Positions 548 to 40,599 of a DNA stretch of 64,000 bases are shown here, one piece after another. A model generated the notes under the pieces. The model was not told where the DNA came from, ran no database searches, and saw only the letters and a program-made list of their open reading frames with translations. Source of the stretch: Eutreptiella sp. 'Long Island Sound 2002' (lineage: Eukaryota > Protista > Euglenida); contig OZ038379.1 in the NCBI GenBank assembly GCA_964036045.1, positions 23,932,001-23,996,000 on the forward strand, read 5' to 3'. A program made the position numbers and the translations under genes. Position 1 is the first letter of the stretch. Each line of letters begins with the position of its first letter.

Positions 548-2368
548 TTGCCAATGGTGTCCATGGAGGAAACCCCCTGGGGCAGCCACCCTGGTCTCAA
601 TGAAAGCAAAAATTTTTTGTCTTTTAATTGGACAGATTCCACAAGTCTCCGGTTGGCTAAACAAGACCCATTTGCTTGTGCAATGTTGGATGAGTTAGAT
701 GAGGGCAGTGTTGGTTTGAGTCGAGAACAGTCTTCAAGTTCGGAGGGACTGTTGTTCTCCGATAGTGACGAGGTGGCAGAGTCCGAGGACGAAGGTATGA
801 CAACCAAAAAGGTTTGTGGTGAAGAAGAAGACATTGTCCCTTGTTCCCAACCCGATTCTGACGTGGAGATTTGTCCCAATGACATTTCTCCTCAAGAGGA
901 TCGGGTAGATGTCACCAAAGAGTTAAATCGTAGTGGCCGCCCGGTGCGGGCCGCTTCGCTTGGTGTTGGTCAATACTTAGTTGCGGCAAGGGCGGCCGCG
1001 GCATCTCGCGCTTGCGTTGAGGCAGGTCCAAGAGGTGCCCGGACCGATCGTCAAAGGCGGGCCCTAAGCCAAACTGCAATGCGAAGGGCAATGACGGATG
1101 TTCAGCCTTACGATCGTAATGAGGCTGTTCCGCAATCTGCCACGCAACCCGCTCCTCTCACTTCTGCCTCTTTGCTGCTTCACAAGTACGTTGCAGATTT
1201 CGAGAAACTGCCATTACGATTTCTGCAATGCAAGGATCGCAACATGTCATCTCTAGATCGTGCGGACATGGAGCGGTTTGTTCAGGAGTTTGGGGACGTG
1301 TACAATAAAGGCGTAACCGAACCAAACCTGGTAAACGGCTTTGCTGACTTAGGATTGTGGCCGTTTTCATGGGAAAAGGTTAGCAAAAAGTTGGATGGAT
1401 TCCGAGCACGGGAAGCAATGCAAAGAGCCCATGATGAACAACAGGATTCCGCAATTAGAGAGGAACTGGCGGTGGCAGCAGCCGAGAGGCCCGAACGCAC
1501 GGTGCGTGTGGTGGTTGAATGGCCCGGGTCACCACGCGATGGTTCTGCTTCTCCCTTGTCTGCTCCTGTCCCGCCCACGCCCACCGCCTCTGTCCGCAGC
1601 TCTAGTGTTAGTACGTGTGTCGGTGGGTCTCCACCCGGCATGACGACTGCCGGCACGCAGGTGTCACCGGGCCTGGGGGTGCGGAAGCGCCTGTGGAAGA
1701 AAAAACCTGATGGGCCCGGTGTGTCAAAGCCCAGGCGCCTGGATCTGGTGTTGATCCGGGGCGGGGAGTTGACCAACGAGGAGGTAGTGGCGGACCTGCG
1801 TGCGGACCAAGCGGACAAGGAACAGAAAAGGGCAGAGGTGGAACAACGGAAAAAGGAAAGGGAAGACAAGCGGGAGCAAAGGAAGAAGGACGAGGAGGAG
1901 AGAAAGAAAAAACAGGAGGAACGGAAACACGCGGCGGAAGAGAAAAAGAGGCGCGCAGCGGAGGAAAAACGGAAGCGAGAGGAGGAACGGGCGGCAACAC
2001 AACGGAGGAAAGAGGAGGAACGGGTGGCCACCCAAAGGCGGAAAGAAGAGGAAAGGGCGGCCAGGCCAAAGCGGGGAGTGAAGCGGAAGGCCGGTCCCGA
2101 ACAGTGGGATGATGGGACCACGTGCCCTTGCGGCAATGATGTCGGGACCGGCCTCACTGAAAACTGGGCCCAGTGTGACACCTGCGAAGCGTGGATTCAC
2201 GACGGCTGCTTTGGCTTGGAATGGGCACGGGACGGCCCATACATTGAGCAGCCTGACAGCCGGTGGCAATGTGCCCGGTGCCGGCCCGCGTCCGATGATG
2301 GAGACGATGGTGACGACTCTGACGCTGACCATTCCCAGCCCTCCATGGCTGGGAGTGATAGCGCATAA
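548..2368 (+). CDS. pogo/Fot1-like (Tc1/mariner superfamily) transposase-derived ORF, N-terminally incomplete, with coiled coil and C-terminal PHD-type finger
   Basis: 606-aa open frame. QPYD resembles the pogo QPLD motif. VYNKGVTEPNLVNGFADLGLWPF resembles the pogo AxxKAxTxxNIxxGFxxxGIxP motif. A K/E/R-rich coiled coil follows, then CPC...CDTCEAWIHDGC...WQCARC (PHD-like). No HTH or upstream DDE motifs recognised. Confidence 0.6.
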   Translation: MPMVSMEETPWGSHPGLNESKNFLSFNWTDSTSLRLAKQDPFACAMLDELDEGSVGLSREQSSSSEGLLFSDSDEVAESEDEGMTTKKVCGEEEDIVPCSQPDSDVEICPNDISPQEDRVDVTKELNRSGRPVRAASLGVGQYLVAARAAAASRACVEAGPRGARTDRQRRALSQTAMRRAMTDVQPYDRNEAVPQSATQPAPLTSASLLLHKYVADFEKLPLRFLQCKDRNMSSLDRADMERFVQEFGDVYNKGVTEPNLVNGFADLGLWPFSWEKVSKKLDGFRAREAMQRAHDEQQDSAIREELAVAAAERPERTVRVVVEWPGSPRDGSASPLSAPVPPTPTASVRSSSVSTCVGGSPPGMTTAGTQVSPGLGVRKRLWKKKPDGPGVSKPRRLDLVLIRGGELTNEEVVADLRADQADKEQKRAEVEQRKKEREDKREQRKKDEEERKKKQEERKHAAEEKKRRAAEEKRKREEERAATQRRKEEERVATQRRKEEERAARPKRGVKRKAGPEQWDDGTTCPCGNDVGTGLTENWAQCDTCEAWIHDGCFGLEWARDGPYIEQPDSRWQCARCRPASDDGDDGDDSDADHSQPSMAGSDSA

Positions 2369-5898: not shown

Positions 5899-8461
5899 AT
5901 GTCACGCTTCTGCGTCACCCTGCACAAGAAGGGGCAACACTTCCGAAGGGGTTTGGGTTTTTTACATGCCGGGGGTTTGCAGGGACCCCAGGAGCCTCAG
6001 CAACGAACGCTGGAGATCTTCCCCTTGCCCATTTCATTTCAGTTTTATTGCATCAAATTGCTGGGGTCCCTTGGATCCTTTTTGCTTTGGTTTGTTGTTG
6101 TGTCATTGCTATGCAGCAGCTGCTGCTCCTGCTGCTGTTGTTGATGTTGCTATTGCTGCTGGTGGTGGTGCTGCTGGTTATGGTTTTGGTAGTGGTGCTG
6201 CTAGGAGTGTGTCTTGGCATTTGCGCATATGGTGCGTGTTGGGGCCAAGCGGTACAACGGGGTACTATGGCTTCTGCATATTCTTCTGCACCAGTCTCAT
6301 GATCATCTGGGGAGTTTCTTCGCGTTTTGTGCTTGCCCCTGCAGTCTGAATAATGTTGTGGCATGTGATGGATCAGCATTTAAGTATCCCCCTCTTGCCT
6401 TGCCCCCCCGCCCCCCCCATCCCCGCCCCTGCCCTGCCCAACCGCAGCGCCTGCCTAGCAGGCAGCCCATCATCGCGGACTAACGCAAAACACCAAATAC
6501 GGATGTCTTCGCTTGCAAAACTTCTAACCTTCAGCGCTTCAGCCCATGTCCCAGTATGGTTGCAATGGGATTCTACAATATCAGCAGAGAGACCATTCTT
6601 CTCCCCTTGTGCCCTGTGCATGAACTGTGCGTCCCCAGCATAAACAAGGGCCGGAAACATGATCTACCTCTACAAAAAATTGTTCATTGCTTTGAGTGAT
6701 GCGATTCAGAAAAAGAACGGTTGAAGGAATTTGACTTGTTCAGAGTTAACTGGGTAAATCCCAGTGATCAATGCTGCGGAGGTGAACACACAGGCAACAA
6801 GTGCATATGCAACCAGGCAAGCGCACACACGATGAGACGAGTATGCAAGCAACCCAAAACCTGCCAACATTCATGACTCAAACTGATGTCCATCACACAT
6901 TCATTATTCTGAGGTATGCATCGTGGGAGAAACGGTTTCGAAGATGTTGTATTGGGGCCCGTTTTCAAGCCATCGCCAGCCTTGAGGACAACCCTTTGGT
7001 TTAGGCTCCGTGACAAGAGCCCTATTTCAGGAGGTCACCACCACAAAGACACTGAGGGCAGGTTCAGGTCTTTTCTGTGGCATACTGGCAGTTGTTACCT
7101 ACTTGCTATATCTGTTTGGTTGCTGACCTGCTTTCCCTGCCCTGGAATCCACCAGCATACCCAGGATTCCTGTTGGGTGTTTGCTGATCCCCTCACCGCT
7201 GTCTGAAGCCCCATGAACAGCGGAGGACATGGCGATCCTTCTGACATTGTCTTTGCCGTTGTGTGCGGTGAGCGTCGCGCGCAGGGTGGGGGATGTCTTG
7301 GCCAGCCAATCCATGTGCCAGGGGTGTAGCCACACAGAACGGAAACGTGCTGTGTGCTCCACAAAGGAAGAGTCTGGGATTGCATGACTGGTTGTTGGTT
7401 CGTTGGGGTGTTACTGGGGATTGCTCAACTTGTTCAAGGATGTGCCGTTTTTCGGAGCGCTGTTGGTGCCTGTTCGGACCTGGAAAGTCTGCCAGGGCAG
7501 GCTGGGCTTGGGGTGGGTGACCTGCCTGCATGGGCTGGGCTGGGGAAGTGGAAAACCATCTGCGGGGCGGAGGGGGGGGGGGCTTCACGTGGAGTATGAC
7601 AAAGAACGGGAGCGGGGGAGATGTGTGGAGCATTGTGGTGTTTGATTCGTGTGGACGGAGCCACTGCCAACACTGACTCCGTCCGTCAGCCCCAACCTGC
7701 CTCGTGTGCAACTCCCTGGGGGAGGGGGGGGGGTGTCAAACAGCCGTAAAACAGTCACCGGTGTCTTCGCTCGCCGCGAGCATGGCTGCCATACTCTGCG
7801 CAGCCACTTGAGGTACCCCCGAGGATGTACATGCCCATCATGAGGCCCCTCACAGTCAGTCTGTGCTGCTACTGTGCCCCGCCGCTGATGCACTGGTCCT
7901 CGGAACATCGGAGGGGCATCAGCACAGGGATAACACATATTGTGAATATGGAGTGGGGAAGGCCCCGCACGGGTGTCGATCGCAAAGAGCTGTTGATTTC
8001 CCCTCTGCATAACTTCAAAATGCAGGACAGGAACTGCGGACAGATATCGCCGCACATTTTGGGTCACGCGATCCAAACTGAAGGGCGATGCGGAGTGCTT
8101 GGGAGGGTCCGCCCGGACTTTATCCAGGGCTTCCATTCAGTAGGTTGGTACGTTTTGACTGCGACGGACATGACATAGGTGCATGATGGGGTACAGCCTA
8201 CTTGTGGTGCTCTGCCCACTGGTGTATGTCCACTGACCGTCAGTGAGCAATGTCGTTGAATACTGCTTTCTTCCATGCCCAAATGGAATGTCATGTGCAG
8301 ATTCCAGGATCAGATCAGATCAGATCAGATCAACACCTCATGCTACGGGAATGACGTTCGTGTGGTCGGTGTCTTCCCTTTGGGTGAGTCTCCCCCGCAT
8401 GCTTTGGATGTGGCACCCATGGGAGTAATCTGCTTCTCCCTATGTGGTGGTCCCGATGTCC
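5899..8461 (+). CDS. Putative upstream exons (long N-terminal region) of the kinase gene; approximate model
   Basis: Hand-built phase-compatible GT-AG chain with candidate introns 5951-5982, 6090-6204, 6386-6542, 6696-6743, 6782-6913, 7062-7208, 7268-7329, ~7513-7754 (frame link not verified), 8140-8307 and 8462-8503. In-frame stops fall inside the introns. No domain recognised and individual boundaries are uncertain. Confidence 0.4.
6095..6200. repeat. Compound TGT/TGC/GGT trinucleotide microsatellite inside a putative intron
   Basis: Visible runs of tgc, tgt and ggt triplets between GT 6090 and AG 6204. Confidence 0.85.
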
Positions 8462-8503
8462 GTGAGTCCTGATACAATCCATTTGCTGACAACTGTGGAT
8501 AAG

Positions 8504-8589
8504 AGGGTCCGTTTCCCAGACCTTGGGACTCTCTGAATACCGCCCACCCACAAGTCGTCACTCTGCGGACACCTTGTCCAGTCACGCCG
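8504..8589 (+). CDS. Kinase-gene exon immediately left of the inverted blocks (GPFPRPWDSLNTAHPQVVTLRTPCPVTP)
   Basis: Preceded by a 42-nt GTGAGT..CTGAC..AAG intron (8462-8503). Its donor exists only after re-inversion: G8590 + TGAG from the reverse complement of 9962. Confidence 0.55.
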
Positions 8590-8590
8590 G

Positions 8591-8732
8591 CCGAAGTGGC
8601 TGTGCCACTTTGTACGTGTCCCCCATGTGCTGCATTAAATCTGCAGAAGCTTTTGTAGCCGCCAGCGGATCTACTGGTGCTTCGGAACCGAGAAGTCTAA
8701 TCTCCTTGAACTCCTCTTCGAGTGCAGTGAGT
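8591..8732 (-). CDS. Kinase-gene exon part ending block A (LTALEEEFKE...GDTYKVAQPLR), leading into the Gly-rich loop
   Basis: Acceptor gagtaaccgaaaagcag| at 8733. Ends at 8591 with no splice donor and joins in frame to 10170(-): YKVAQPLR|TGKLGTVYK. Confidence 0.75.
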
Positions 8733-9016
8733 CTGCTTTTCGGTTACTCATGTTCTCGGGTTCTACTGTCTCCCCTGATACCTCAACCGAGCTCCAATGG
8801 GTGCGGACGATGGACCATGGCTGCATCGTGGCCCATGGTGGCCCATCACAACCTAGGAATCCTGCAGATGTGACTGTCACAGAGGCTGATGCAAGGCATG
8901 TTGAGATGCAACGAGAGGCAATACAACACAATGAGGAAAGAAATTGCATCCCGGCAGTATCCGCTTTAGCCGGAGGTAGCAGGGCGAAGCTTTTCTGGCT
9001 CAGGGAGCGGTGTGAC

Positions 9017-9221
9017 CTCGGTCTCAAGATAGTAGAATCAATGCTATGATAGTTCCGGAGAGACACGGTTGCGGACATGACAACTTGTGAGGTACTGCTG
9101 AATCCATTTCCAATTGGTGTTGCCAAGCCATGGGCCCACGCCAGACACACGTAATGATGAACCCCTCCCTCTACTGTGTGCCACGCATTCCCTCCTGGCC
9201 GCAGGAGATAGGTATTTCCAT
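9017..9221 (-). CDS. Kinase-gene exon in inverted block A (GNTYLLRPGG...DSTILRP)
   Basis: Open frame with matching phases. Donor AG|GTCACA at 9016; an alternative phase-2 donor GTGTTG lies at 8929. Confidence 0.5.
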
Positions 9222-9269
9222 CTTCAGTTCTCTTTTTCTTGGTCTAATCGTCAGTTGTCTATCCACTAC

Positions 9270-9465
9270 GGTCCCAATAGCTGGCAGTGGGGCTTCTGTG
9301 TATGCAGACAATCTCATTTTGTGTTACAGCGGCACAGAAAGTGTTGCGGTGGTCCAGGAAATTTAAGGCCAACTGAAGATTTTTGGGACTTTCGGGGTAT
9401 ACGGAACCATCTGCAGGAAACTGTACGACTGTCAAAAACCAGCGAGTTGCAGAGTACATGACAAC
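9270..9465 (-). CDS. Kinase-gene exon in inverted block A (VVMYSATRWF...PTASYWD)
   Basis: 65 codons + 1 nt, open. Followed by a 48-nt GT..ACTGAC..AAG intron (9269-9222) that contains both TAG stops of this frame. Confidence 0.6.
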
Positions 9466-9535
9466 CTTACGGAACCATCTGCAGGAAACTGTACGACTGT
9501 CAAAAACCAGCGAGTTGCAGAGTACATGACAACCT
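9400..9535. repeat. Perfect 68-bp tandem duplication (2 copies) in coding sequence
   Basis: 9400-9467 and 9468-9535 are identical. Confidence 0.97.
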
Positions 9536-9605
9536 TTGAGTTCCTGGGCATGTCCAAACAATTTGTGTTACTTGGGACAAAGACTTGGTAATATCTTGGT
9601 ATCAG
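9534..9605 (-). CDS. Kinase-gene exon in inverted block A (LIPRYYQVFVPSNTNCLDMPRNSK)
   Basis: Minus-strand acceptor cacctgtcccag| at 9606; phase 0 matches the exon ending at 8589; followed by AAG|GT at 9533. Confidence 0.65.
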
Positions 9606-9962
9606 CTGGGACAGGTGGGTGATTATTACAAATCATGCGTCTAGACTAACTCTACAACAGGGAATTAGACCGGCATTCATGTTGTCCACTTAGGACGACC
9701 TTTTCAATGCAACCTGTTGCCTTAACGCAAGCAGTGGTAGGCTGGGCTAGGCAGCAGGAGTAGTAGATAGAGGAGTGTGGGATTTCTTGTGCAGTGAGCT
9801 AGAATCTGAGAACAACATGTACGCTTGTGCGTTTTGCATTGCATATGGTGTGCTTGTGTGTGGCGCCAAAACACACATCACTGACGGCACATCAACCACA
9901 TGGGCACAAGGATAAGTTGTCAAATACATCTGACGGACCTAGGGAAACCCCGATGAATCTCA

Positions 9963-10170
9963 ACAGGAACGCATCAAAGAGCCGGACACAATGCGGTGAC
10001 TTGATATGCTTCAAGATTTCAATCTCATGCAATATTCGCCTCCATTGATCCGTCTGGCAGGCTGGAGGCTTGTTTATCACCTTCACTGCGTACCAATCCC
10101 CGACTGTGGGACCATCCTCAGTACGGGCTTTGATACACTGGGACTTGTAGACAGTGCCCAGCTTCCCAGT
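9963..10170 (-). CDS. Kinase subdomains I-IV in inverted block B
   Basis: TGKLGTVYK...WYAVKVINK...HEIEILKHIKSPHCVRLFDAFL: Gly loop, catalytic Lys, alphaC Glu and subdomain IV, on the strand opposite to the rest of the kinase domain. 208 nt = 69 codons + 1. Confidence 0.92.
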
Positions 10171-10259
10171 CCGACTGTGCGGTGTTTCTTGTTCTGGAAT
10201 ATGTTAGCGGAGGAGAATTATTTCACTTCGTTCGAAATCGAGGCTACATGTCAGAACAG
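10171..10259 (+). CDS. Kinase subdomain V exon part (DCAVFLVLEYVSGGELFHFVRNRGYMSEQ)
   Basis: CAMK-type LEYVSGGELF hinge; donor CAG|GTGTTG at 10260. No acceptor at its 5' end, which joins block B in frame (ttc ctg t|cc gac). Confidence 0.92.
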
Positions 10260-10375
10260 GTGTTGGTGGTGGTGTTGATGTTGGCTTGTCGAGTCGTGTT
10301 GTGTCGTGTTGAATTAAGCGGTGTTGTGCTGTGCTGTGCTGTGCTGAGGTTGTGTTGTGATGTACTGTGCTGGGA
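10260..10375. repeat. GT-rich degenerate pentamer microsatellite (GTGTT/GTGCT)
   Basis: gtgttgtgtcgtgttg...gtgctgtgctgtgctg directly after the donor; abuts a LINE 3' end. Confidence 0.8.
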
Positions 10376-11640
10376 TGCGCCGAAGGTGCTGTTACCAGAA
10401 GGCAATGGCCGGGATGTCTACCCACAGGTACAGGTAAACGGGAGGCCTGTGTGTATAGCATGCGTGCTGTGTGCAAGTGTGTGGATATGGGCAGAAAGAG
10501 GGGAGTAGGGGAAACCTGGAGGTCACCCACCAGGCGACTGCTATCAGCCCAGAAGCTCCCACTGCACGCCCTCTCTCTCTCCGCCTACTGGTGCAAGCGC
10601 AGCTCGTGCAGCAGGCACGCCATCATGCTGTTCGGGCCCAAGCGGGCCTTTAGCAACGTGGCACGCGCCTTGGCGTGGGCATACCAAACTCTGATGGGCT
10701 CCTCGATGACGTGGTGTATGAACTCAGTCCCCAGTGCGTGGGGCCCAGAGCACTCCATGTGGCCCCGCTACATGGAGGGGGTGCGCAACGCTGCCGCCCA
10801 CTGTTCCAGAACATCCGGCTCCAACAGCTGGTTGCGCACCGACACAGCCGGATTCCCCATTTTCTGGTCTAACCACTCCGTGAGTCGCCGGTGAGCCGGC
10901 CTCCACTTGTGCGACTGGGCCGAGCAGGCCCAGAGGTGGGGCGCCGTTTCTGGCTGTGCCCCACAGAGGAGTCAGGTGGTGTCTAGCACCATGTTACGGT
11001 GGGACGAATGGTGCGCCAGGACGGTCATCGTTGGGGTGTTGTCCATACGGTGCGCTGATATATGGCGCTGCTGGTCAGTGTCTAAGCAGTTGAGGGGGAG
11101 GCCACTCCCCGGTGCGTAGTTTGCTCCCCATCGAGCCTCATCTTCGACCCGTGCCAGAATGGAGGCTTGATCCTGTAACCAGTCGCCCAGCGCCGTGGGG
11201 GAAAGTTGGCACTGGTCCCGGTAGGTCACCGGGGGGAGAAAGGAGAAGCAGCAACAGAGGAGCCACATGAGGTCCACTTCCGTTGGCTCCTGCGTCGCCG
11301 CATCCACGCGGACGTTGCGGTCTGTGATCCAGTGCGACGGCGTGGTGACCACATTGATGGCCGAGGCTGGGGAGAGGCGGCGGCCCCCCAAGACTGTGGC
11401 ATACATGTGGGGTATGCCATCTCCACAGTGGCCCCCAATTTACTGGTTTTCAGCTTCCAGTCGAAGAACTCTGTCACATTCCCAAAGGGAATGAATTCCG
11501 AGTAATTCTGCAGCTGCGGAGTGGCCATCAGGTAACACCGACAAGAACTCTTCTGAAAGGATTTATGTGGGGAAAGCAGTTGGCCATGGCCTGGATCTTC
11601 GGGGTTTTGGGTTGAAACTCTGCATCAACATCCAGGTATC
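10376..11640 (-). mobile_element. 3' end of a degenerate non-LTR retrotransposon (family A)
   Basis: Homologous to 25996-26530 (gccgaagg.gctgttacca...ccgggatgtctacccac) and to 62500-63100. Decayed C-terminal ORF (IRVWYAHAKARATLLKARLG). Confidence 0.7.
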
Positions 11641-11879
11641 ACTGAACAGCAACCCTTCCGCCCCCCCCCCCCAAACCCTCACATAAATGTTGCACAACAT
11701 TCGCACGACAGTCACACAACATGACATGCAACACTGTCACACCACTCACACCACACTAACACCTTACTTACAGAACACTCTAAGCACTCACAGCACTCAC
11801 ACGATGCTTGCACAACACTCTAACGATGCTCACACAACATGAATAATTGGCTCCCCAAATGTGGTAGCTCCACCTGGGG

Positions 11880-12420
11880 CGCCTGTGTGTGTGTGTCCCA
11901 CGGCTGGGTCATCCTGAGGTATTGCACTCGGTGCGTCATGATTCATGCACAGCCATCTGCAGCCCTCGACCAACAGAAGCGCAGACCTATTTTGCAACTG
12001 CCTTCTTGGGCAAAAGGCAGGTGGTTAGCTTGAGTGGATCTGCTGATGTGCCAGTCCATACATGCCAATGATCTGCACCAATGTTCAGGTTGTCCTCCTC
12101 GGGGAAAACAAATAAACTTGCAGTCATGCAGACACAGTCATGCAACACAGACAGGGAAATCCCGTTACCCCCCAATGCCTGCACAAGCCTTTATCTAGTT
12201 CAACAAAATCCAGGCTGCGGACTTCAATTGCAACTCATCATTGCAATAGTGGGTCGCAATGCTGTGACCATCCACCGGACGCCGCACGCGCCATCTCCCC
12301 TCGGGTCCATTGTCCCACCCCCACTCGTGGAAGATGGACCACCTCCCGCCCACACTGAAGGAGGTCTCCCAGGGTCTACAGTGGGACATGCTCCTGGGGC
12401 AGGGGTGACATAAGAGCGTT
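11880..12420 (-). mobile_element. Diverged family-A-like LINE C-terminal fragment next to a CA-rich tract (11690-11840)
   Basis: Minus-strand TASLFVFPEEDNLNIG peptide resembles the family-A C-terminal region; similarity judged by eye. Confidence 0.4.
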
Positions 12421-12454
12421 TGGAAGGTGTGCGTTTGGGGACTCTTCAAGGGCA

Positions 12455-13900
12455 ACCTGGTCTAAAAAGTAGCGCGCAGTGCGCGCGCACTGTAAGGGCT
12501 CCCCCGGTGGGCCATATTGCTGCCCGCACTGTTCAAGGGATAAAGGATGAATGAGCCTTAAGACAATTGTATAGCCCTAGGGGGAGCCTTAAGCGCAGTG
12601 CGCGTGCAGTGCGCGCGCACTGCAACTATTTGGGCGTCCGGCCGTACTAGAGACCCATACTTTGAGATACTAGGGGCCCCTAGGGGCATCATGGTGACCC
12701 CTAGCGCAGGTTTTGACTTCTGATTTTGTCCCCCTTTGTTTGGGTGTGCCGAAGGTGATTGAGCATATCTTGCGGTTCGGCAAGGGTAACCACTTACCAA
12801 GGGATGAGGAAAGTGTAATTATTCAGGATGGGCTTGATGGCCAACCATTCTCTGAAGGCGGCAGTGAAGCGCCAACACTGCAGCCTGCGATTGACCGTTT
12901 GCGCCATGAGAAAAGAGAGAGAGAGAGGCCAAGAAACAAGCAAAACATGCGCGGCAGGTCCTAGAAAAGCGGCAACACACACTGGATGCTTTTTGTGTTG
13001 CTGCGCCCCCTCGGGCCGATGTGGCTTCGTCCAGCTCCAATCTCCCTCAACCCTCTCAGTCCTCGCAACCCCCTGTGGCTACACAATCTCAACCCCAATC
13101 CGATTCCCAAACCGCAAGGGAATGGAGAGAGCCCCTTCCTCACAACCAAAACCACGCATGCGGCACTGGGGCATCGTAAGGAACATGTGTGTGTTATGTT
13201 AAGGGAAGGTAGTTTGCAACTTTCTTGAGCTGGGGCAGTTTGGGTCACCTAATTCTAAGGGCGTTTCCAAGGGGTGTGCTTGGGGGCTCTTCGGGGGGAA
13301 CATAGTCTAAAAGTAGCGTGCAGTGCGCGCGCAGTGCAAAGATTCCCCCCTAGAAGCACATGGAAATACCCACTTTTAAAGACACTAGTTGTGCGGTGGG
13401 TCAGCTTTGCTAGACGTACAATCCACCGCCCAGGGAAACGCACCTGAGCAGAGTATCTGCATAATGGAACTGGAACTCAGGGCACATGTGGGGGCGCACT
13501 TAGCGCAGTGCGCGCGCCGTGCAAGCGCAGTGCAACTATTTGGGCATGTGGCCGTACTAGAGACCCATACTTTGTGATTCTAGGGGGGCATCATTGTTGT
13601 TTGAGAGTAGGTTTTGATACTTCTTCCACATTGGGGATATGGCATTTTTGGATTTTCACCTACTTTCACCAATTCCCCCCCCTTTTTCACACTTTTTTGC
13701 TCATTTCCACCACATCCACCCTTTCCTAGGTTGATTTCTCCCCACCATGGGACCTCGAAAAGCAGAGGTGATGTATCCATGTTGTTTCCCCCCCATCATG
13801 GGGACCCCGAGCAGGCACGGCTGATGTCGGACCTCAGTATCATGATCAAGGCTGAGGGACAATCTAGCATTCTCTCCAACTATTGTATCATGTCCAAGTA
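12455..13900. repeat. Two nearby copies of a dispersed non-coding (MITE-like) repeat
   Basis: gcagtgcgcgc..gtgcaactatttggg..ggccgtactagagacccatacttt occurs at ~12595 and ~13505, and inverted at ~53830-54095. Confidence 0.7.
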
Positions 13901-25935: not shown

Positions 25936-25995
25936 GGTGTGGTGTGGTGTGATGTGGTCTGTTGCAGTGCGGTGCGGTGCGGTGTGGTGTGGTGT
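25936..25995. repeat. (GTGTG)n pentamer microsatellite separating two head-to-tail LINE copies
   Basis: ggtgtggtgtggtgtgatgtgg...gtgcggtgcggtgtggtgtggtgt lies between a 5' end (left) and a 3' end (right). Confidence 0.85.
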
Positions 25996-26537
25996 GCCGA
26001 AGGCGCTGTTACCAAAAGGCAAAAGGCCGGGATGTCTACCCACGGGTAACTGGGCTGTGTGTGTTGTGTGCGCGCCGTGCGTAAGTGTGTAGGCCTCGGC
26101 AGGGGGAGGGGGAGTCGGGGAGACCTGGTGAGTTCGCCTCTGGCAACCGCGCTTATTCCAGGAGCTCCCGCTGCACCCCTTCCCTTTCTGCTTGCTGGTG
26201 CAGGCGCAGCTCCTGCAACGCCCACGCCATCGTGCTGCCCGGGCCCAGGCGGGCCTTCAGCAGTGTGGCACGCGCCTTGGCGTGGGCGTACCAGATCCGT
26301 ATGGACTCCTCCACGACGTGGCGGAGGAACTCCGTGCCCAGCGAGTGGGGCCCCGTACACTCCAGGTGGGCCAGCTGCATGGAGGGGGTCCGCAGGGCTG
26401 CCGCCCACTGCTCCAGCACAGTCGGTTCCCACAGCTGGTGACGCACTGGGGCCGCCCGTGGCCCCACCTTCTGGTCGAGCCACGCTGCGAGGCGCCGGCG
26501 GGCTGGCCCCCACTCGTGCGATTGAGCCGAGCAGCCC
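25996..26537 (-). mobile_element. 3' end of a second family-A LINE copy, cut off by the satellite
   Basis: Homologous to 10376-10930; EFLRHVVEESIRIWYAHAKARATLLKARLG. Similarity to the first copy stops at ~26533 where the array begins. Confidence 0.75.
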
Positions 26538-29500
26538 CTCCTGCAATACACTACCTCACTGCCCGGGGGCAACGGGCAGCGGACCTCCTGCAATGCACTG
26601 CCCCACTGCCCTGGGGGCAGTGGGCAGTGGACCTCCTGCAATGCACAGCCTCGCCGCTTGGGGGCAGTGGGCAGTGGAACTCCTGCAATGCACTGCCCCA
26701 CTGCCTGGAGGCAGTGGGCAGTGGACCTCCTGCAATCCACTGCCTCACTGCCTGGGGCAGTGGGCAGTGCAATTCCTGCAATGCACTGCCTCACTGCCCG
26801 GGGGCAGTGGGCAGTGCAACTCCTGCAATACACTGCCCCACTGCCTGGGGGCAGTGGGCAGTGGACCTCCTGCAACACACTGCCTCACTGCCTGGGGGCA
26901 GTGGGCAGTGGACCTCCTTCAATGCACTGCCCCACTGCCTGGGGGCAGTGGGCAGTGGACCTCCTGCAATACACTGCCTCACTGCCTGGGGGCAGTGGGC
27001 AGCGCAACTCCTGCAGGCACTGCCGCACCGCCTGGGGGCAGTGGGCAGTGGACCTCCTGCAATACACTGCCTCACTGCCTGGGGGCAGTGGGCAGTGGAA
27101 CTCGTGCAATACACTGCCCCACTGCCTGGGGGCAGTGGGCAGTGCAACTCCTGCAATCCACTGCCTCACTGCCTGGGGGCAGTGGGCAGTGCAACTCCTG
27201 CAATGCACTGCCCCACCGCCTTGGGGCAGTGGGCAGTGCAACTCCCGCAATACATTGCCTCATTGCTTGGGGGCAGCGGGCAGTGCACATCCCCCAATGC
27301 ACTGCCCCCATTCCTGGGGGCAAGGGGCAGTGGACTTCCTGCAATACACTGCCTCACTGCCTGGGGGCAGTGGGTAGTGGACCTCCTGCAATACACCGCC
27401 TCACTGCCTGGGGGAAGCAGGCAGTGCAACTCCTGCAATGCACTGCCTCACTGCCTGGGGGCAGTGGGCAGTGGAACCCCTGCAATGCACTGCCCCACTG
27501 CCTGGGGGCAGTGGGCAGTGCAACTCCTGCAACGCACTGCCTCACTGCCTGGGGGCAGTGGGCAGTGCAATTTCTGCAATGCACTGCCTCACTGCCCTGG
27601 GGCAGTAGGCAGTGGAACTCCTGCAATGCACTGCCTCACTGCCTGGGAGCAGTCGGCAGTGCAACTCCTGCAATGCACTGCCTCACTGCCCTGAGGGCAG
27701 TGGGCAGTGCAACTCATGCAATGCACTACCTCACTGCCTGGGGGCAGTGGGCAGTGCAACTCCTGCAATGCACTGCCTCACTGCCTGGGAGCAGTGGGCA
27801 GTGCAACTCCTACAATGCACTGCCTCACTGCCTGGGGGCAGTGGACAGTGCAGCTTCTGCAATGCACTGCCTCACTGCCTGGGGGCAGTAGGCAGTGGAA
27901 CTCCTGCAATGCACTGCCTCACTGCCTAGGAGCAGTGGGCAGTGGAACTCCTACACTGCACTACCCCACTGCCTGGGGGCAGTGGACAGTGCAGCTTCTG
28001 CAATGCACTGCCTCACTGCCTGGGGGCAGTGGACAGTGCAACTTCTGCAATGCACTACCCCACTGCCTGGGGGCAGTGGGCAGTGGACCTCCGGCAATAC
28101 ACTGCCGCACTGCCTGGGGGCAGTGGGCAGTGCAACTCTTGCAATGCACTGCCTCACTGCCTGGGGGCAGTGGGCAGTGGAACTCCTGCAATGCCCCGCT
28201 TCATTGCCTGGGGGCAGTGGGCAGCACAACTCCTGCAATGCACTGCCTCACTGCCTGGGGGCAGTGGACAGCGCAACTCGTGCAATGCACTGCCCCACTG
28301 TCTGGGGGCGGTGGGCAGTGGACCTCCTGCAATCCACTGCCTCACCGCCTTGGGGCAGTGGGCAGCGCAACTCCTGCAATGCACTGCCCCACTGCCTGGG
28401 GGCAGTGGGCAGTGCAACTCCTGCAATACACTGCCGCACTGTCCGGGGGCGGTGGGCAGCGCATCTCCTGCAATGCACTGCCTCACTGCCCTGGGGCAGT
28501 GGGCAGTGCAACTTCTGCAATGCATTGCCTCACTGCCTGGGGCCAGTGGGCAGTGCAACTCCTGCAATGCACTGCCCCACTGCCTGGGGGCAATAGACAG
28601 TGCAACTTTTGCATTGCACTGCCTCACTGCCCTGGGGACAGTGGGCAGTGCAACTTTTGCAATGCACTGCCCCACTGCCTGGGGGCAGTGGGCAGTGGAA
28701 CCCCTGCAATCCACGGCCTTACTGCCTGGGGGCAGTGGGCAGTGTAACTCCTGCAATACACTGCCGCACTGTATGGGGGCAGTGGGCAGCCCAACTCCTG
28801 CAATGCACTGCCGTACTGCCTGGGAGCAGTGGGCAGTGGACCTCCGGCAATACATTGCCGGACTGCCGGGGGGCAGTGGGCAGTGCAACTCCCGCAATGC
28901 GCTGCCGCACTGCCTGGGGGCAGTGGGCAGTGGACCTCCTACGATGCACTGCCTCACTGCCTGGGGGCAGTGGACAGTGCAACTCCTGCAATGCACTGCC
29001 GCACTGCCTGGGGGAAGTGGGCAGTGGAACTCCTGCAATGCACTGCCTCACTGCCTGGGGGCAGTGGACAGTGCAACTCCTGCAATGCACTGCCGCACTG
29101 CCTGGGGGCAGTGGGCAGTGCAACTCCTGCAATGCACTGCCCCACCGCCTGGGAGCAGTGGACAGTGCAACCTCTGCAATGCACTGCCCCACCGCCGGGG
29201 GGCAGTGGGCAGTGGAACTTCTGCAATGCACTGCCCCACCGCCGGGGGGCAGTGGGCAGTGGAACCCCTGCAATGCGCTGCCTCAGTGCCCTGGGGGCCG
29301 TGGGCAGCGCAATTCCGGCAACGCACTGCCTCACTGCCTGGGGGCAGTGGGCAGTGCAACTCCTGCAATACACTGCCGCACTGTCTGAGGGCAGTGGGCA
29401 GCGGAACTCCTGCAATGCACTGCCCCACTGCCTGGGGGCAGTGGGCAGTGCAACTCCTGCAACACACTGCCGCACTTTCAGGGGGCAGTGGGCAGCGCAA

Positions 29501-32500
29501 CTCCTGCAATGCACTGCCTCACTACCCTGGGGGCAGTGGGCAGTGGAACTTCTGCAATGCACTGCCTCATTGCCCCGGGGGCAGTGGGCAGTGCAATTCC
29601 TGCAATGCACTGCCTCACTGCCTGGGGGCAGTGGGCAGCGCAACTCCTGCAATGCACTGCCTCACTGCCCTGGGGGCAGTGGGCAGTGGAACTTCTGCAA
29701 TGCACTGCCTCATTGCCCCGGGGGCAGTGGGCAGTGCAATTCCTGCAATGCACTGCCTCACTGCCTGGGGGCAGTGGGCAGTGCAACTCCTGCAATGCAC
29801 TGCCTCACTGCCTGGGGGCAGTGGGCAGTGGACCTCCGGCAATACACTGCCGCACTGCCTGGGGGCAGTGGGCAGTGCAACTCCTGCAATGCACTGCCTC
29901 ATCGCATGGGGGCAATGGGCAGTGGACCTCCGGCAATACACTGCCGCACTGCCTGGGGGCAGTGGGCAGTGCAACTGCTGCAATGCACTGCCTCACTGCC
30001 TGGGGGCAGTGGGCAGTGGAACCCCTGCAATGCACTGCCCCACCGCCGGGGGGCAGTGGACAGTGCAACTCCTGCAATACACTGCCGCACTGTCTGAGGG
30101 CAGTGGGCAGCGGAACTCCTGCAATGCACTGCCCCACTGCCTGGGGGCAGTGGGCAGTGCAACTCCTGCAACACACTGCCGCACTTTCAGGGGGCAGTGG
30201 GCAGCGCAACTCCTGCAATGCACTGCCTCACTACCCTGGGGGCAGTGGGCAGTGGAACTTCTGCAATGCACTGCCTCATTGCCCCGGGGGCAGTGGGCAG
30301 TGCAATTCCTGCAATGCACTGCCTCACTGCCTGGGGGCAGTGGGCAGCGCAACTCCTGCAATGCACTGCCTCACTGCCCTGGGGGCAGTGGGCAGTGGAA
30401 CTTCTGCAATGCACTGCCTCATTGCCCCGGGGGCAGTGGGCAGTGCAATTCCTGCAATGCACTGCCTCACTGCCTGGGGGCAGTGGGCAGTGCAACTCCT
30501 GCAATGCACTGCCTCACTGCCTGGGGGCAGTGGGCAGTGGACCTCCGGCAATACACTGCCGCACTGCCTGGGGGCAGTGGGCAGTGCAACTCCTGCAATG
30601 CACTGCCTCATCGCATGGGGGCAGTGGGCAGTGGACCTCCGGCAATACACTGCCGCACTGCCTGGGGGCAGTGGGCAGTGCAACTGCTGCAATGCACTGC
30701 CTCACTGCCTGGGGGCAGTGGGCAGTGGAACCCCTGCAATGCACTGCCCCACCGCCGGGGGGCAGTGGACAGTGCAACTCCTGCAATGCACTGCCTCACT
30801 GCCTGGGGGCAGTGGGCAGTGCAACTGCTGCAATGCACTGCCTCACTGCCTGGGGGCAGTGGACAGTGCACCACTGCAATGCACTGCTGCACTGCCTGGG
30901 GGCAGTGGGCAGTGCAACTCCTGCAATGCACTACCTCGCTGCCTGGGGGCAGTGGGCAGTGCAACTTCTGCAATGCACTGCCTCACTGCCTGGGGGCAGT
31001 GGGCAGTGGACCTCCGGCAATACACTGCCGCACTGCCTGGGGGCAGTGGGCAGTGCAACTCCTGCAATGCACTGCCTCACTGCATGGGGGCAGTGGGCAG
31101 TGGACCTCCGGCAATACACTGCCGCACTGCCTGGGGGCAGTGGGCAGTGCAACTCCTGCAATGCACTGCCTCACTGCCTGGGCGCAGTGGGCAGTGGAAC
31201 CCCTGCAATGCACTGCCCCACCGCCTGGGGGCAGTGGACAGTGCAACTCCTGCAATGCACTGCCTCACTGCCTGGGGGCAGTGGGCAGTGCAACTGCTGC
31301 AATGCACTGCCTCACTGCCTGGGGGCAGTGGACAGTGCAACTCCTGCAATACACTGCCGCACTGTCTGAGGGCAGTGGGCAGCGGAACTCCTGCAATGCA
31401 CTACCTCGCTGCCTGGGGGCAGTGGACAGTGCAACTCCTGCAGTGCACTGCCCCATTGCTTGGGGGCAGTGGGCAATGGAACTCCTGCAATGCACTGCCC
31501 CACTGCCTGGGAGCAGTGGACAGTGCAACCTCTGCATTGCACTGCCTCACTGCCCTGGGGGCAGTGGGCAGTGCAACTTCTGCAATGCACTGCCGCACTG
31601 CCGGGGGGCAGTGGGCACTGGAACCCCTGCAATGCACTGCCTCACTGCCCTTGGGGCAGTGGGCAGTGCAACTCTTGCAATGCACTGCCGCACTGTCTGG
31701 GGGCAGTGGGCAGCGCAACTCCTGCAATGCACTGCCCCACTGCCTGGGGGCAGTGGGCAGTGGACCTCCGGCAATACACTGCCGCACTACCTGGGGGCAG
31801 TGGGCAGTGCAACTCCTGCAATGCACTGCCTCACTGCCTAGGGGCAGTGGGCAGTGGACCTTCTGCAATGCATTGCCTCTCTGCCTAGGGCCAGTGGACA
31901 GTGCAACTTCTGCAACGCACTGCCCCACTGTCTAGGGGCAGTGGGCAGTGCAACTCCTGCAATACACTGCCGCACTGTCTTGGGCAGTGGGCAGCGGAAC
32001 TCCTCTAATGCACTGCCCCACTGCCTGGGGGCAGTGGGCAGTGGACCTCCGGCAATACACTGCCACACTGCCTGGGGGCAGTGGGCAGTGCAACTCTTGC
32101 AATGCACTGCCACACTGCCTGGGGGCAGTGGGCAGTGGACCTCCTGCAATGCACTGCCTCAGTGCTTGGGGGCAGTGGACAGTGCAACTCCTGCAACGCA
32201 CTGCCCCACTGTCTAGGGGCAGTGGGCAGTGCAACTCCTGCAATACACTGCCGCACTGTCTTGGGCAGTGGGCAGCGGAACTCCTCTAATGCACTGCCCC
32301 ACTGCCTGGGGGCAGTGGGCAGTGGACCTCCGGCAATACACTGCCACACTGCCTGGGGGCAGTGGGCAGTGCAACTCTTGCAATGCACTGCCACACTGCC
32401 TGGGGGCAGTGGGCAGTGGACCTCCTGCAATGCACTGCCTCAGTGCTTGGGGGCAGTGGACAATGCAACTTCTGCAACGCACTGCCCCACTGCCTAGGGG

Positions 32501-33747
32501 CAGTGGGCAATGCAACTCCTGCAATGCACTGCCTCACTGCCTGGGGGCAGTGGACAGTGCAACTCCTGCAATGCACTGCCCCACTGCCTGGGGGCAGTGG
32601 GCAGTGCAACTCCTGCAATGCACTGCCCCACTTCCTGGGGCAGTGGACAGTGCAACTTTTGCAATGCGCTGCCTCACTGCCCTGGGGGCATTGGGCAGTG
32701 GAACTTCTGCAATGCACTGCCTCACTGCCTGGGGGCAGTGGGCAGTGGAACCCCTGCAATGCACTGCCTCTCTGCCTTGGGGGCAGTGGGCAGTGCAATT
32801 CCTGCAATGCACCGCCTCACTGCCTGGGGGCAGTGGGCGGTGCAGCTCCTGCAATACACTGCCGCACTGTCTGGGGGCAGTGGGCGGCGCAATTCCTGCA
32901 GTGCATTGCCGCGCTGCCGGGGGCAGTGGGCAGTGGACCTCCGGCAATACATTGCCGCACTGCCTGGGGGCAGTGGGCAATGCAACTGCTGCAATGCACT
33001 GCCTTACTGCCTGGGGGCAGTAGGCAGTGCAACTCCTGCAATGCACTGCCTCACTGCCTGGGGGCAGTGGACAGTGCAACTCCTGCAAGGCACTGCCCCA
33101 CTGCCTGGGGGCAGTGGGCAGTGCAACTCCTGCAATACATTGCCGCACTGTCTGGGGGCAGTGGACAGTGCAACTCGTGCAATGCACTGCCTCACTGCCT
33201 GGGCGCAGTGGGCAGTGGAACCCCTGCAATGCACTGCCCCACTGCCTGGGGGCAGTGGACAGTGCAACTCCTGCAATACACTACCGCACTGCTTGGGGGC
33301 AGTGGGCAGCGCAACTCCTGCAACGCACTGCCTCACTGCCTGGGAGCAGTGGGCAGCGCAACTCCTGCAACGCACTGCCTCACTGCCTGGGAGCAGTGGG
33401 CAGTGCAACTCCTGCAATGCACTACCTCACTGCCTGGGGGCAGTGGACAGTGCAACTCTTGCAATGCACTGCCCCACCGCCTGGGGGCAGTGGGCAGTGC
33501 AACTCCTGTAATACACTGCCGCACCGCCTGGGGGCAGTGGACAGTGCAACTTCTGCAATGCACTGCCCCGCTGCCTGGGAGCAGTGGGCAGTGCAACTCC
33601 TGCAATGCACTGCCTCACTGCCTGGGGGCAGTGGGCAGCGCAACTCCTGCAACGCGCTGCCTCACTGCCTGGGATCAGTGGGCAGTGCAACTCCCGCAAT
33701 GCACTGCCTCACTGCCTGGGGGCAGTGGGCAGTGCAACTTTTGCAAT
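26538..33747. repeat. 47-bp hairpin-forming satellite, ~150 copies
   Basis: Consensus GGCAGTGGGCAGTGCAACTCCTGCAATGCACTGCCTCACTGCCTGGG; larger duplicated blocks at 709-bp and 281-bp spacing. Confidence 0.97.
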
Positions 33748-36700
33748 GGGTGGTCGGAGTGTCCTGCAGGGCCTGTGGGGATGTACTACCCGGCGCACCA
33801 GCCTGGGGGGATGGGGAGTCCACCCCAGGGGGTGGTCGGGGCATCCTTCAGGGCCTATGGGGGGCCATCATCTTCGGAGAACCGGGCGCACCGGCCTGGG
33901 GGGGGACGGGGAGTCCAGCCCAGGGGGTGGTCGGAGCCTCCTGCAAGGCCCATGGGGAGCCAGCATCTTCCAAGAACCGGGCGCACCGGCCTGGGGGGAC
34001 GGGGGGTCCTGCCCAGTGGGTGGCCGGAGTATTCTTCAGAGCGCATGGGGAGGCGTCATCTTCGGAGAACCGGGCGCACCGGCCTGGGGGGGACGGAGAG
34101 TCCAGCTCAGGGGGTGTTCAGAGCCTCCTGCAAGGCCCACGCGGAGCCATCCTCTTCTAATAACCGGGCGCACCGGCCTGGGGGGGACGGGGAGTCCAGC
34201 CCAGGGGGTGGTCGGAATCTCCTGCAAGGCCCATGGCGAGCCATCCTCTTCCAATAACCAGGCGCACCGGTCTGGGGGGGACGGGGAGTCCAGCCCAGGG
34301 GGTGGTCGGAGTATCCTGCAGGGCCCATGGGGAGGCATCATCCTTCAAAAACCGGGCGCACCGGCCTGGGGGGGACGGGGAGTCCACCCCAGGGGGTGGT
34401 CGGGGCATCCTTCAGGGCCTATGGGGGGCCATCTGCTTCGGAGAACCGGGTGCACCGGCCTGGGGGGGGCGGGGAGTCCAGCCCAGGGGGTGTTCGGAGC
34501 CTCCTACATGGCCCGTGGGGAGCCATCATCCTTCAAGAACCGGGCGCACCGGCCTGGGGGGGACGGGGAGTCCTGCCCTGGGGGTGGTCGGGGCATCCTT
34601 CAAGGCCAATGGGGGGCCATCTGCTCCGGAGAACCGGGCGCACCGGCCCGGGGGGGACAGGGAGTCCTGCCCAGGGGGTGTTCGGAGTCTCCTGCCAGGC
34701 CAATGGGGGGCCATCTTCTTCAGAGAACCGGGCGCACCGGCCTCGGGGGGACGGGGAGTCCTGCCCAGGGGGTGTTCGGAGCCTCCTGCAAGGCCAGTGG
34801 GGGGCCATCTTCTTCAGAGAACCGGGCGCACCGGCCTGGGGGGGACGGGGAGTCCTGCCCTGGGGGTGTTCGGAGCCTCCTACCAGGCCAATGGGGGGCC
34901 ATCTTCCTCAGAGAACCGGGCGCACTGGCCTGGGGGGGACGGGGAGTCCTGCCCTGGGGGTGTTCGGAGCCTCCTGCCAGGCCAGTGGGGGGCCATCGTC
35001 TTCAGAGAACCGGGCGCACCGGCCTGGGGGGGACGGGGAGTCCTGCCCAGGGGGTGTTCGGAGTCTCCTGCCAGGCCAATGGGGGGCCATCTTCTTCAGA
35101 GAACCGGGCGCACCGGCCTGGGGGGGACGGGGAGTCCTGCCCAGGGGGTGTTCGGAGTCTCCTGCCACGCCCATGGGGGGCCATCTTCTTCAGAGAACCG
35201 GGCGCACCGGCCCGGGGGGGACGGGGAGTCCTGCCCAAGGGGGTGTTCGGAGCCTCCTGCCAGGCCTACGGGGGGCGACCTTCTTCAGAGAACCGGGCGC
35301 ACCGGCCTGGGGGGGACGGGGAGCCCAGCCCAGGGGGTGTTCGGAGCCTCCTGCCAGGCCAGTGGGGGGCCAATATCTTCGGAGAACCGGGCGCACCGGC
35401 CTGGGGGGGACGGGGAGTCCAGCCCAGGGGGTGTTCGGAGCCTCCTGCCTGGGCCAGTGGGGGGCCATCTTCTTCAGAGAACCGGGCGCACCGGCCTGGG
35501 GGGGACGGGGAGTCCTGCCCTGGGGGTGTTCGGAGCCTTCTGCCAGGCCAATGGGGGGCCATCTTCCTCAGAGAACCGGGCGCACTGGCCTGGGGGGGAC
35601 GGGGAGTCTTGCCCAAGGGGTGTTAGGAGCCTCCTGCCAGGCCTACGGGGGGCGACCTTCTTCAGAGAACCGGGCGCACTGGCCTGGGGGGGACGGGGAG
35701 CCCAGCCCAGGGGGTGTTCGGAGCCTCCTGCCAGGCCAGTGGGGGGCCAATATCTTCGGAGAACCGGGCGCACCGGCCTGGGGGGGGACGGGGAGTCCAG
35801 CCCAGGGGGTGGTCGGAGCCTCCTGCAAGGCCCATGGGGAGCCAGCATCTTCCAAGAACCGGGCGCACCGGCCTGGGGGGACGGGGGGTCCTGCCCAGTC
35901 GGTGGCCGGAGTATTCTTCAGAGCGCATGGGGAGGCGTCATCTTCGGAGAACCGGGCGCACCGGCCTGGGGGGGACGGAGAGTCCAGCTCAGGGGGTGTT
36001 CAGAGCCTCCTGCAAGGCCCACGCGGAGCCATCCTCTTCTAATAACCGGGCGCACCGGCCTGGGGGGGACGGGGAGTCCAGCCCAGGGGGTGGTCGGAAT
36101 CTCCTGCAAGGCCCATGGGGAGCCATCCTCTTCCAATAACCAGGCGCACCGGTCTGGGGGGGACGGGGAGTCCAGCCCAGGGGGTGGGCGGAGTATCCTG
36201 CAGGGCCCATGGGGAGGCATCATCCTTCAAAAACCGGGCGCACCGGCCTGGGGGGGACGGGGAGTCCACCCCAGGGGGTGGTCGGGGCATCCTTCAGGGC
36301 CTATGGGGGGCCATCTGCTTCGGAGAACCGGGTGCACCGGCCTGGGGGGGGCGGGGAGTCCAGCCCAGGGGGTGTTCGGAGCCTCCTACATGGCCCGTGG
36401 GGAGCCATCATCCTTCAAGAGCCGGGCGCACCGGCCTGGGGGGGACGGGGAGTCCTGCCCTGGGGGTGGTCGGGGCATCCTTCAAGGCCAATGGGGGGCC
36501 ATCTGCTCCGGAGAACCGGGCGCACCGGCCCGGGGGGGACAGGGAGTCCTGCCCAGGGGGTGTTCGGAGTCTCCTGCCAGGCCAATGGGGGGCCATCTTC
36601 TTCAGAGAACCGGGCGCACCGGCCTGGGGGGGACGGGGAGTCCTGCCCAGGGGGTGTTCGGAGCCTCCTGCAAGGCCAGTGGGGGGCCATCTTCTTCAGA

Positions 36701-39025: not shown

Positions 39026-40500
39026 CAGGACCCGTGGGTACCCCCTCCTACCTCTTAGCAGCAGCAGGCAAGTAAGCAGGCAGTACCGGGGGTCAGAACC
39101 CCGGGGTAACAGTATCTGGGACTCAACGTGAGTCCTCTTAACCAGGAACAACCCCAAACACCGCCGGGGCTTAACTCCCGAACGTAACGGTGTTTGGGGC
39201 CCCCGTGGGCCTTATGAGCCCACGGAGTGTACTGAGGCGTGGCTACCAGCACTTAAAGTCTGGCCTGCCATACCCATTTCTGGGCTCGCCTCAGTACGAC
39301 CGGTCGGGTCCGGCTCTGGGGGCTGCGCACTAAACCGGCACCGGGAGAGGGCCGTTTTACCCGGTTAAGCATTACTTATGGCAGTAGGCACTAATTATTA
39401 CATTAGGGTTTTACTCAGCGCATTTGTTTACCCCGCAGACATGCCCCTCCAGTGGTGCGCTCACCTTTGGGGCTGCTTTTGGGGGACCGGGGGCTGTTAC
39501 CCCTCCCGGACGCCCTCCCTGGTGTTGGCGCCGGGGTGGTGGCCGGGGGGCCTTATACCGTACCTCAAAGGATGCTGGATACCAAATACCGGGGCGTCCA
39601 GCCGGACGGGGACAGGGGCGGATCCTTGAGCAACGGCGTGGGGGCATGCACCCCTTGTTTTATGTCTACCACCTCGTTCCTGTTTAAACCACCGGCCGTT
39701 GGGCCACAGAGCGGACAAGGGCAGCGTGGCCTCGAACCGCCATCACCAGCGGGGCCACACTGCCCTTCCGGCATTGTCCTGCCGGCTGCACTCAGGCAGG
39801 CTTGGTAAGGCAGGTCTTGCAGGGCGGGGGGTCGTTTTTGAGGCCCCCCGCGCATGTCTGGGCCACAGGCCTTCCAGGCTCTGCGGTGCCGCTCCGCTCT
39901 CTCAGCCTCCCGTAGTCCCTCTAAATCTCACACCCACTCACACACCCTGCATACCCCTGTTGGCCCTGCTGCGCCACTGAAGCCCCTGCATGGGGGCCTC
40001 CTCGGTGCGGCTGATACCCTCACGCGGCCGGCCGCCGATGCGGGGCCCTGGGGGCGCGCCGCTCGGGCGCTGCCAGCCTGCAAGGGGAGTAGGGCTAGGG
40101 AGGGTTTTGGGATGGGTGAGGCAGCAGGGGGCGAGGAGAGGAGGCAGCACAGGGGCGGCCGTCGGGGCGCGCGGAGGGGCGGCCGTGGGGGGGCTGGGGC
40201 AGGAGCGCGGGGGGGGGCGCATGTCTGGGCTGCGGTGCGGGCCCTGTACGTGGGCGGGCGTGTAGGGGAAGAGAGGAGGGGGAGGCTTGGTCAGCCGTCC
40301 TCTACTGGGGGTCGCTGACCGTTCCCAGGGCCGAGGCGGCCGGTACTAGGGGCCGCGGGGTCCCTGGGGATGGTGCTTGGCACTGGGACGTGCGCGCACC
40401 CGACACTGTTAGTACACCGCCTATTGGCAGTGCCCGGGCCCTGTCGTCCGGGGCTTCGCACCCGGCACCCAGCCCGTGGGTAGAGCTGGGGAGTACTCAG
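39026..40500 (-). mobile_element. 5' end of the second family-A LINE copy
   Basis: 40300-40500 is homologous to 25770-25935 (gcacccggcacccag...gggtag.gct.gggg...actcag) and is followed by a GT-rich microsatellite. Confidence 0.65.
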
Positions 40501-40585
40501 GGTGTGGTGTGGTGTGGTGGGGTGGGGTGCTGTTGTGGCGTCTGCGCTGTGTTGTGTTGTGGCGTGTAATGTTTTGTGATGTTGT
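40501..40585. repeat. GT-rich pentamer microsatellite just upstream of the intron acceptor
   Basis: ggtgtggtgtggtgtggtgg...gtgttgtgttgtggcg...gttgttgtgt then aaaacacag|. Confidence 0.85.
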
Positions 40586-40599
40586 TGTGTAAAACACAG

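Follow-up and report, generated by a model that had tools for sequence, protein, structure and literature searches.

A conserved protein kinase gene in this DNA carries its catalytic subdomains on both strands. This raises the question of how its pieces are arranged, whether the arrangement is real, whether a full kinase can still be made from it and how it came about. The original prediction was that two adjacent blocks, A (8591-9962) and B (9963-10170), had each been inverted in place in an otherwise intact gene. We examined the gene in the window, the 64,000-nucleotide stretch of DNA analysed here, and found a different geometry.

The pieces of the kinase gene

Judged from its sequence, the gene is a CAMK-like Ser/Thr protein kinase (PF00069). 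Subdomains I-IV lie on the minus strand in block B (9963-10170), which translates without a stop as TGKLGTVYKSQC...AVKVINK...LHEIEILKHIKSPHCVRLFDAFL, from TGKLG to RLFDAFL plus one nucleotide. It holds the remainder of the G-loop, the VAIK lysine and the alphaC glutamate. Block B matched positions 10-67 of Pfam Pkinase with E=7e-6 and 26.1 bits, which is below the 31.7-bit cut-off, as expected for a 69-residue piece; in tblastn against the window its match to homologues reached E=2e-16. Directly after block B, the plus strand from 10171 reads (S)DCAVFLVLEYVSGGELF..., and subdomains I-IV and V thus abut head-to-head at 10170/10171. Subdomain V is encoded by E3 (10171-10259, plus strand, (S)DCAVFLVLEYVSGGELFHFVRNRGYMSEQ), which is followed by a GT donor at 10260. 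The remaining plus-strand pieces are E4 (40600-40764, subdomains VIa-VII with HRDLKPEN and DFG, acceptor cacag| at 40599) and E5 (42936-43745 including the stop codon, coding to 43742), which carries subdomains VIII-XI and a C-terminal tail. E5 is the called protein P0001, which has 269 amino acids, carries PF00069 and has an intact frame. E3, E4 and E5 are still colinear and are separated by GT-AG introns, and HRD, DFG and APE lie at 40669, 40732 and 43056. The original prediction was therefore right that subdomains I-IV run on the minus strand (10170->9963) and that V resumes on the plus strand at 10171, but it left unstated that VI-XI (HRD and DFG in E4, APE to XI in E5) lie about 30 kb downstream of E3 on that same strand. 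It was also right that the catalytic lysine, the alphaC glutamate, HRD, DFG and APE are intact: AVKV, LHEIEIL, HRDLKPEN, DFG and APE are all present.

The first coding piece was found with homologues. With E5 as query, the protein collection returned its own called protein and three related kinases, P0002-P0004, at 45-57% identity. These sit on short JGI contigs that are probably transcript-derived, and the kinase gene is conserved and expressed in the related organisms they come from. In tblastn against the window, P0002 and P0004 matched 11504-11433 on the minus strand (E=1e-3 and 4e-4), and the contig of P0003 backs this placement with the upstream frame ..NYTELVPFAEVTDYFDW..KLGEGTFG. The piece, E1 (11433-11528, minus strand), has its ATG at 11528, in line with the start of the homologues. 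It comprises 32 codons that end in ..KTSKLG, reads MATPQLQNYSEFIPFGNVTEFFDWKLKTSKLG along minus 11528->11433, and is now downstream of and antisense to E3.

All three homologues put the N-terminal segment, just before the glycine loop, outside block A. The original prediction had given that block exons of its own and had joined it to B as YKVAQPLR|TGKLG; the reverse complement of block A reads ..MQHMGDTYKVAQPLR and is without homology to the family, and the true partner of B is E1. The terminal inverted repeat of block A (4/14) is at the level of chance. Block A appears to be single-copy, non-coding DNA that borders the B-tail breakpoint on its left side. It contains a perfect 68-bp tandem duplication (9400-9535; 2.0 copies, 100% identity) in single-copy DNA.

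Once joined, E1, B and E3 form an ancestral exon of about 393 nt that is colinear with the homologues. The conceptual E1+B+E3+E4 is in frame and is 60% identical to P0002 over 179 amino acids (E=5e-75), with a sole gap of one amino acid distant from both joints. The E1|B joint would read ..AAATTGGGG|ACTGGGAAG.. and restores G-T-G-K-L-G (LG|TGKLG), the GxGxxG loop, which is formed only across that joint. The B|E3 joint would read ..GTTCCTGT|CCGACTGTG.. and is codon-exact against the homologues, the last base of B completing the split codon T|CC. In this joint the original prediction was exact, and its statement that no base had been lost holds for the coding bases, as both joints align without a gap.

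On the plus strand the layout is therefore as follows: the flank up to 9962, the reverse complement of B, E3 with about 1.2 kb of repeat, the reverse complement of E1 and its upstream DNA, and then E4 and E5. Breakpoint 1 (9962/9963) joins the flank to the tail of B. Breakpoint 2 (10170/10171) joins the heads of B and E3 with 2 nt of microhomology. Breakpoint 3 (11432/11433) joins the repeat end (..CACAGTGGC) to the tail of E1. The repeat-derived DNA between E3 and the inverted E1 (10260-11432) consists of a GT-rich microsatellite followed by a high-copy repeat; together with E3 it makes up block C (10171-11432), the 1262 nt that lie between E1 and B.

The E3-E4 interval, about 29-30 kb, is a block of 63-71% G+C filled with high-copy repeats and satellite arrays. 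One array (26538-33748) has 153 copies of a 47-bp unit and starts exactly at the end of a repeat copy (25939-26538), and another (33788-39027) has 56 copies of a 94-bp unit. Both ends of this intron (10260-10380 and 40480-40599) consist of GT-rich microsatellite resembling (GTGTTG)n, and the microsatellite at the 5' end belongs to a repeat family. The intron may have started out short or transposon-derived and have expanded later. The E4-E5 intron has a putative border GG|GTATTA (40770-40780) and is followed by cag|GTATTG (42925-42935), which gives a direct repeat of GTATT. Direct repeats at intron borders occur in transposon-derived introns. A short repeat with the palindrome GCAGTGCGCGCGCACTGC is found at 12580-12680, and also at 13490-13586 and 54004-54088 (other strand). 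Its summed depth is about 7x10^5 to 10^6 against a baseline of 27, which places it among the most abundant sequences of the genome.

Read data and possible messages

Contigs from public runs (Logan) were placed on 7001-13000. Runs X1 and X3 are different samples with a word depth of 27-33x. In each of them 8034-9429 and 9507-10255 are each covered by one contig with 0 differences, the first spanning 8590/1 and the second both 9962/3 and 10170/1, and an X1 contig (11365-12380) crosses breakpoint 3, again with 0 differences. The gap at 9430-9506 is where the 68-bp duplication collapses in short-read contigs; we found no evidence that this duplication is exonic. The 10170/10171 junction is exact also in an X5 contig (10134-10255), from a low-depth run labelled as another organism, and in an X6 contig (10088-10238), from the RNA library of an estuary metatranscriptome. 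The X6 fragments may be pre-mRNA, antisense RNA or contaminating DNA. A further X6 contig (8453-8690) is colinear across 8590/8591, where the original prediction had placed its first join, and that join falls away.

The scrambled arrangement is genuine DNA in several independent data sets. Only one orientation was seen in X1, X3, X5 and X6, in contigs, which lose rare variants and may miss a minority form. At the junctions these contigs carry the scrambled order and no colinear form. No alternative joints or loose ends at the breakpoints are listed in the contigs of any run. Because the alternative joint is absent from every run, the rearrangement is apparently homozygous or fixed in the sampled populations, rather than a single allele. 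Exon depth in X1 and X3 equals the depth of neighbouring unique non-coding DNA.

We considered several ways in which a full kinase message could be made from this DNA. The boundaries of the pieces carry no splice signals. The minus-strand spacer between E1 and B begins with GC and ends with GG, and its boundary slides by 2 nt only; the other introns of the kinase gene are GT-AG. Block C was rejected as an intron of a minus-strand gene on account of these GC..GG ends and the 2-nt slide. Trans-splicing of B to E3, which lie on opposite strands, was also rejected, because a message spliced from the sole GT at the tail of B to the AG preceding E3 would be in the wrong frame. Flipping block C at its 6-bp inverted repeats would leave B out and place E1 next to E3 in the wrong frame. 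The original prediction had held splicing powerless to repair the gene, and we see no ordinary route either. If minus-strand RNA were read unspliced from the ATG, E1 would be followed by 68 codons of unrelated sequence. The frame that E3 uses on the plus strand is interrupted by a stop at 10131-10133, 37 nt before the junction, and offers no ATG until the end of E3.

Searches for a product or a second copy gave the following results. Neither a product with a restored joint nor a paralogue was present in the protein collection, where only the window's own open reading frames matched, and scans of JGI metagenome contigs with block B and with the repeat end gave no match. The protein atlas matched only generic kinases. 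The notion that two partial paralogues face each other was rejected, as the window holds no second B, E3, E4 or E5 and the protein collection holds no second E5-like protein from this assembly. A dinoflagellate spliced-leader relic and Rfam families were sought, and none was found.

Origin of the rearrangement and its rival readings

The original prediction explained the order of the pieces by two inversions, one of block A and one of block B. The pieces are in fact U (E1 with its upstream DNA), B and C (E3 with the repeat), and they now lie in the order -B, +C, -U. Treated as a signed permutation, the change from (U, B, C) to (-B, +C, -U) needs at least three reversals, and all six minimal paths reuse breakpoints. 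We infer that the route was either at least three inversions that reused breakpoints or a single four-break event with conservative re-ligation.

Several features of the breakpoints bear on how this may have happened. The repeat at 10260-11432 has a summed depth of 1e3-8e4 against a baseline of 27, contains no Pfam domain that we could find, and has a copy, 75% identical, at 25939-26538. A paralogous repeat contig from X5 ends at 11436, which places the end of the high-copy repeat at 11432-11436. This clue and those that follow are post hoc and each weak alone: block C has a terminal inverted repeat (CCGACTGTG...CACAGTGGC) matching at 8/14, as do about 2% of random blocks (p about 0.02), with 6 perfect bp at +4 to +9 from each end, so that its ends read ..ACTGTG / CACAGT.. 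(CACAGT-type); block B has one matching at 7/14, all seven in the outer ten bases (p about 0.06); and there are 2 nt of microhomology at each ancestral joint (E1|B and B|E3). No target-site duplication was seen at the repeat end, and a scan for other copies of this end was empty. Among called genes within +/-10 kb and the tested open frames of 10260-11432, no recombinase was found with Pfam.

Two further observations concern this region. On the plus strand at 10161-10172 the frame of E3 continues over the breakpoint as ..ASQ|SDCAV.., which mimics the ..AFQ|SETAV.. of the homologues; this mimicry, like the acceptor-like CTTCCCAG| at the same place, arises because there is an imperfect inverted repeat at both ends of B. 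Farther to the left, a frame of 604 amino acids (554-2365, plus strand, open from 527) has a weak C-terminal PHD-finger match that is below the cut-off (E=0.0018). It contains a ..GFADLGLWPF.. motif that we take to resemble pogo or DDE transposases, and no Pfam transposase domain was detected in it.

Based on these data, we propose that the locus is a real complex rearrangement that has recently broken a conserved kinase gene and left a young pseudogene, and we hold this reading to be probable. The exon would have been broken at two codon-exact points, and double-strand-break repair would have re-ligated the pieces. Transposable elements are abundant in this region, and the cuts may have been made by a transposase, possibly at one true end and one cryptic end. 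E1, B and E3 would then have been rejoined in altered order and orientation without the loss of any coding base. We favour such an origin because the repeat ends at a breakpoint, CACAGT-type inverted repeats flank block C and the joints share 2 nt of microhomology. Without a full-length kinase mRNA, the locus would be a young pseudogene that yields at most truncated N-lobe or C-lobe products. The original prediction had included a complex rearrangement killing one allele among its readings. This is now the best supported of them, but it would not concern a single allele, since no alternative joint occurs in any run.

This proposal carries two tensions. First, the frames of all pieces are still open, that of the 269-residue last exon included, and no catalytic motif has been lost, which means that the break is very recent or that the gene is still used somehow. 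Second, the scrambled form was found in every source examined, and a loss-of-function allele would thus have to have spread widely.

One alternative is that the two halves survive as separate transcription units, with a short minus-strand N-lobe peptide and a plus-strand C-lobe pseudokinase that has a new or residual role. Splicing of the plus-strand unit would rely on the acceptor-like CTTCCCAG| at 10169, which leads in frame into E3-E4-E5 (cag|TCC GAC...). The colinear E3, E4 and E5 with their GT-AG introns, the intact frame of E5 and the RNA-library fragments at 10088-10238 and 8453-8690 are all consistent with such units. However, the fragment at 10088-10238 passes the putative acceptor unspliced, the plus frame meets the stop at 10131-10133 and finds its first ATG only at the end of E3, and the product would lack the ATP-binding lobe. 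The unspliced minus-strand RNA would add only unrelated codons (68 of them) to E1, and a 30-kb, satellite-filled intron lies between E3 and E4. We therefore regard separate units as unlikely.

A second alternative is that the gene is encrypted and is reordered into a full kinase gene by a programmed DNA rearrangement, by a recombinase or transposase, or by a process at the RNA level, in an unsampled stage or nucleus. Breaks that are codon-exact and cost no coding base, the intact motifs, the short terminal inverted repeats on blocks B and C and the wide occurrence of the scrambled form in natural samples would all fit this idea, which the original prediction had also raised. It fits the remaining data poorly. 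The two deep runs show the scrambled junctions only, with no second orientation and with exons no deeper than their flanks, and the sole RNA-library fragment over a breakpoint follows the scrambled DNA. The ‘pointers’ measure 2 nt only, the inverted repeats are imperfect and 6-7 bp long, no recombinase gene was recognised beside the locus, and the restored protein fragment is absent from the protein collection. We consider an encrypted gene very improbable. Equally improbable, in our judgement, is the broader proposal that many genes in this genome, the kinase among them, have exons inverted or permuted base-exactly by an activity derived from a transposase or recombinase, perhaps reversed in another life stage or nucleus; if true, it would be programmed gene unscrambling outside ciliates.

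Weakest is the idea that the true genome is colinear and the order an artefact of assembly or amplification, as the original prediction had allowed: the window does come from a metagenome-type long-read assembly (contig ctg9829_38x_l), but independent contigs from the two deep runs, a low-depth run and the metatranscriptome hold the junctions with 0 mismatches and none is colinear, which leaves this idea next to no probability.

The recent breakage of the gene thus remains our preferred reading. The locus is a clean natural example of a multi-break rearrangement, in which a conserved exon lies in three pieces with no coding base lost, as seen in independent read sets. We take it as the probable record of a gene lost very recently in a wild microbial eukaryote. 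If base-exact inversions elsewhere in this genome proved real and numerous, an active process that generates inversions would be indicated for this lineage, and it might be driven by a transposase or be reversible.

Comparison with known systems

Adjacent DNA segments that differ in orientation recall the shufflons and invertons of bacteria. Unlike those, the present locus is in a eukaryotic genome, is seen in one orientation and has neither conserved recombination sites nor an adjacent recombinase; the inverted repeats of B (7/14) and C (8/14) are only marginally above chance.

The scrambled genes of Oxytricha and Stylonychia are closer in form. As here, a single gene has its segments permuted and inverted, with exact junctions, and its product is colinear only after reordering. 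In contrast to the ciliate genes, no unscrambled copy is present in the DNA data for this locus, which are contigs and can miss rare forms, and the ‘pointers’ at E1|B and B|E3 are 2 nt long rather than several bp. The long GT-AG introns and the 58% G+C of the window also fit a ciliate genome poorly.

Alternative or aberrant transposition, for example by reversed Ac/Ds ends or at cryptic recombination signals, inverts DNA base-exactly and reshuffles it locally, with a transposon end as the anchor. The ends of block C (..ACTGTG / CACAGT..) and the high-copy repeat that ends at breakpoint 3 resemble this. The locus differs from such events in that neither a transposase nor complete terminal inverted repeats nor a target-site duplication was found there, and in that kinase coding sequence forms the left ‘end’ of block C.

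The last comparison is with balanced germline rearrangements of the chromothripsis or chromoplexy type, in which shattered DNA is repaired by end joining. The kinase locus differs from chromothripsis in its tiny scale, with three of its four breaks within about 1.5 kb of one exon, and in the repeat terminus and CACAGT-like inverted ends at its breakpoints. It resembles these rearrangements in its clustered breaks, in fragments of 0.2-1.3 kb whose order and orientation changed on re-ligation while nothing was lost, in microhomology of 0-2 nt, and in the disruption of a gene.
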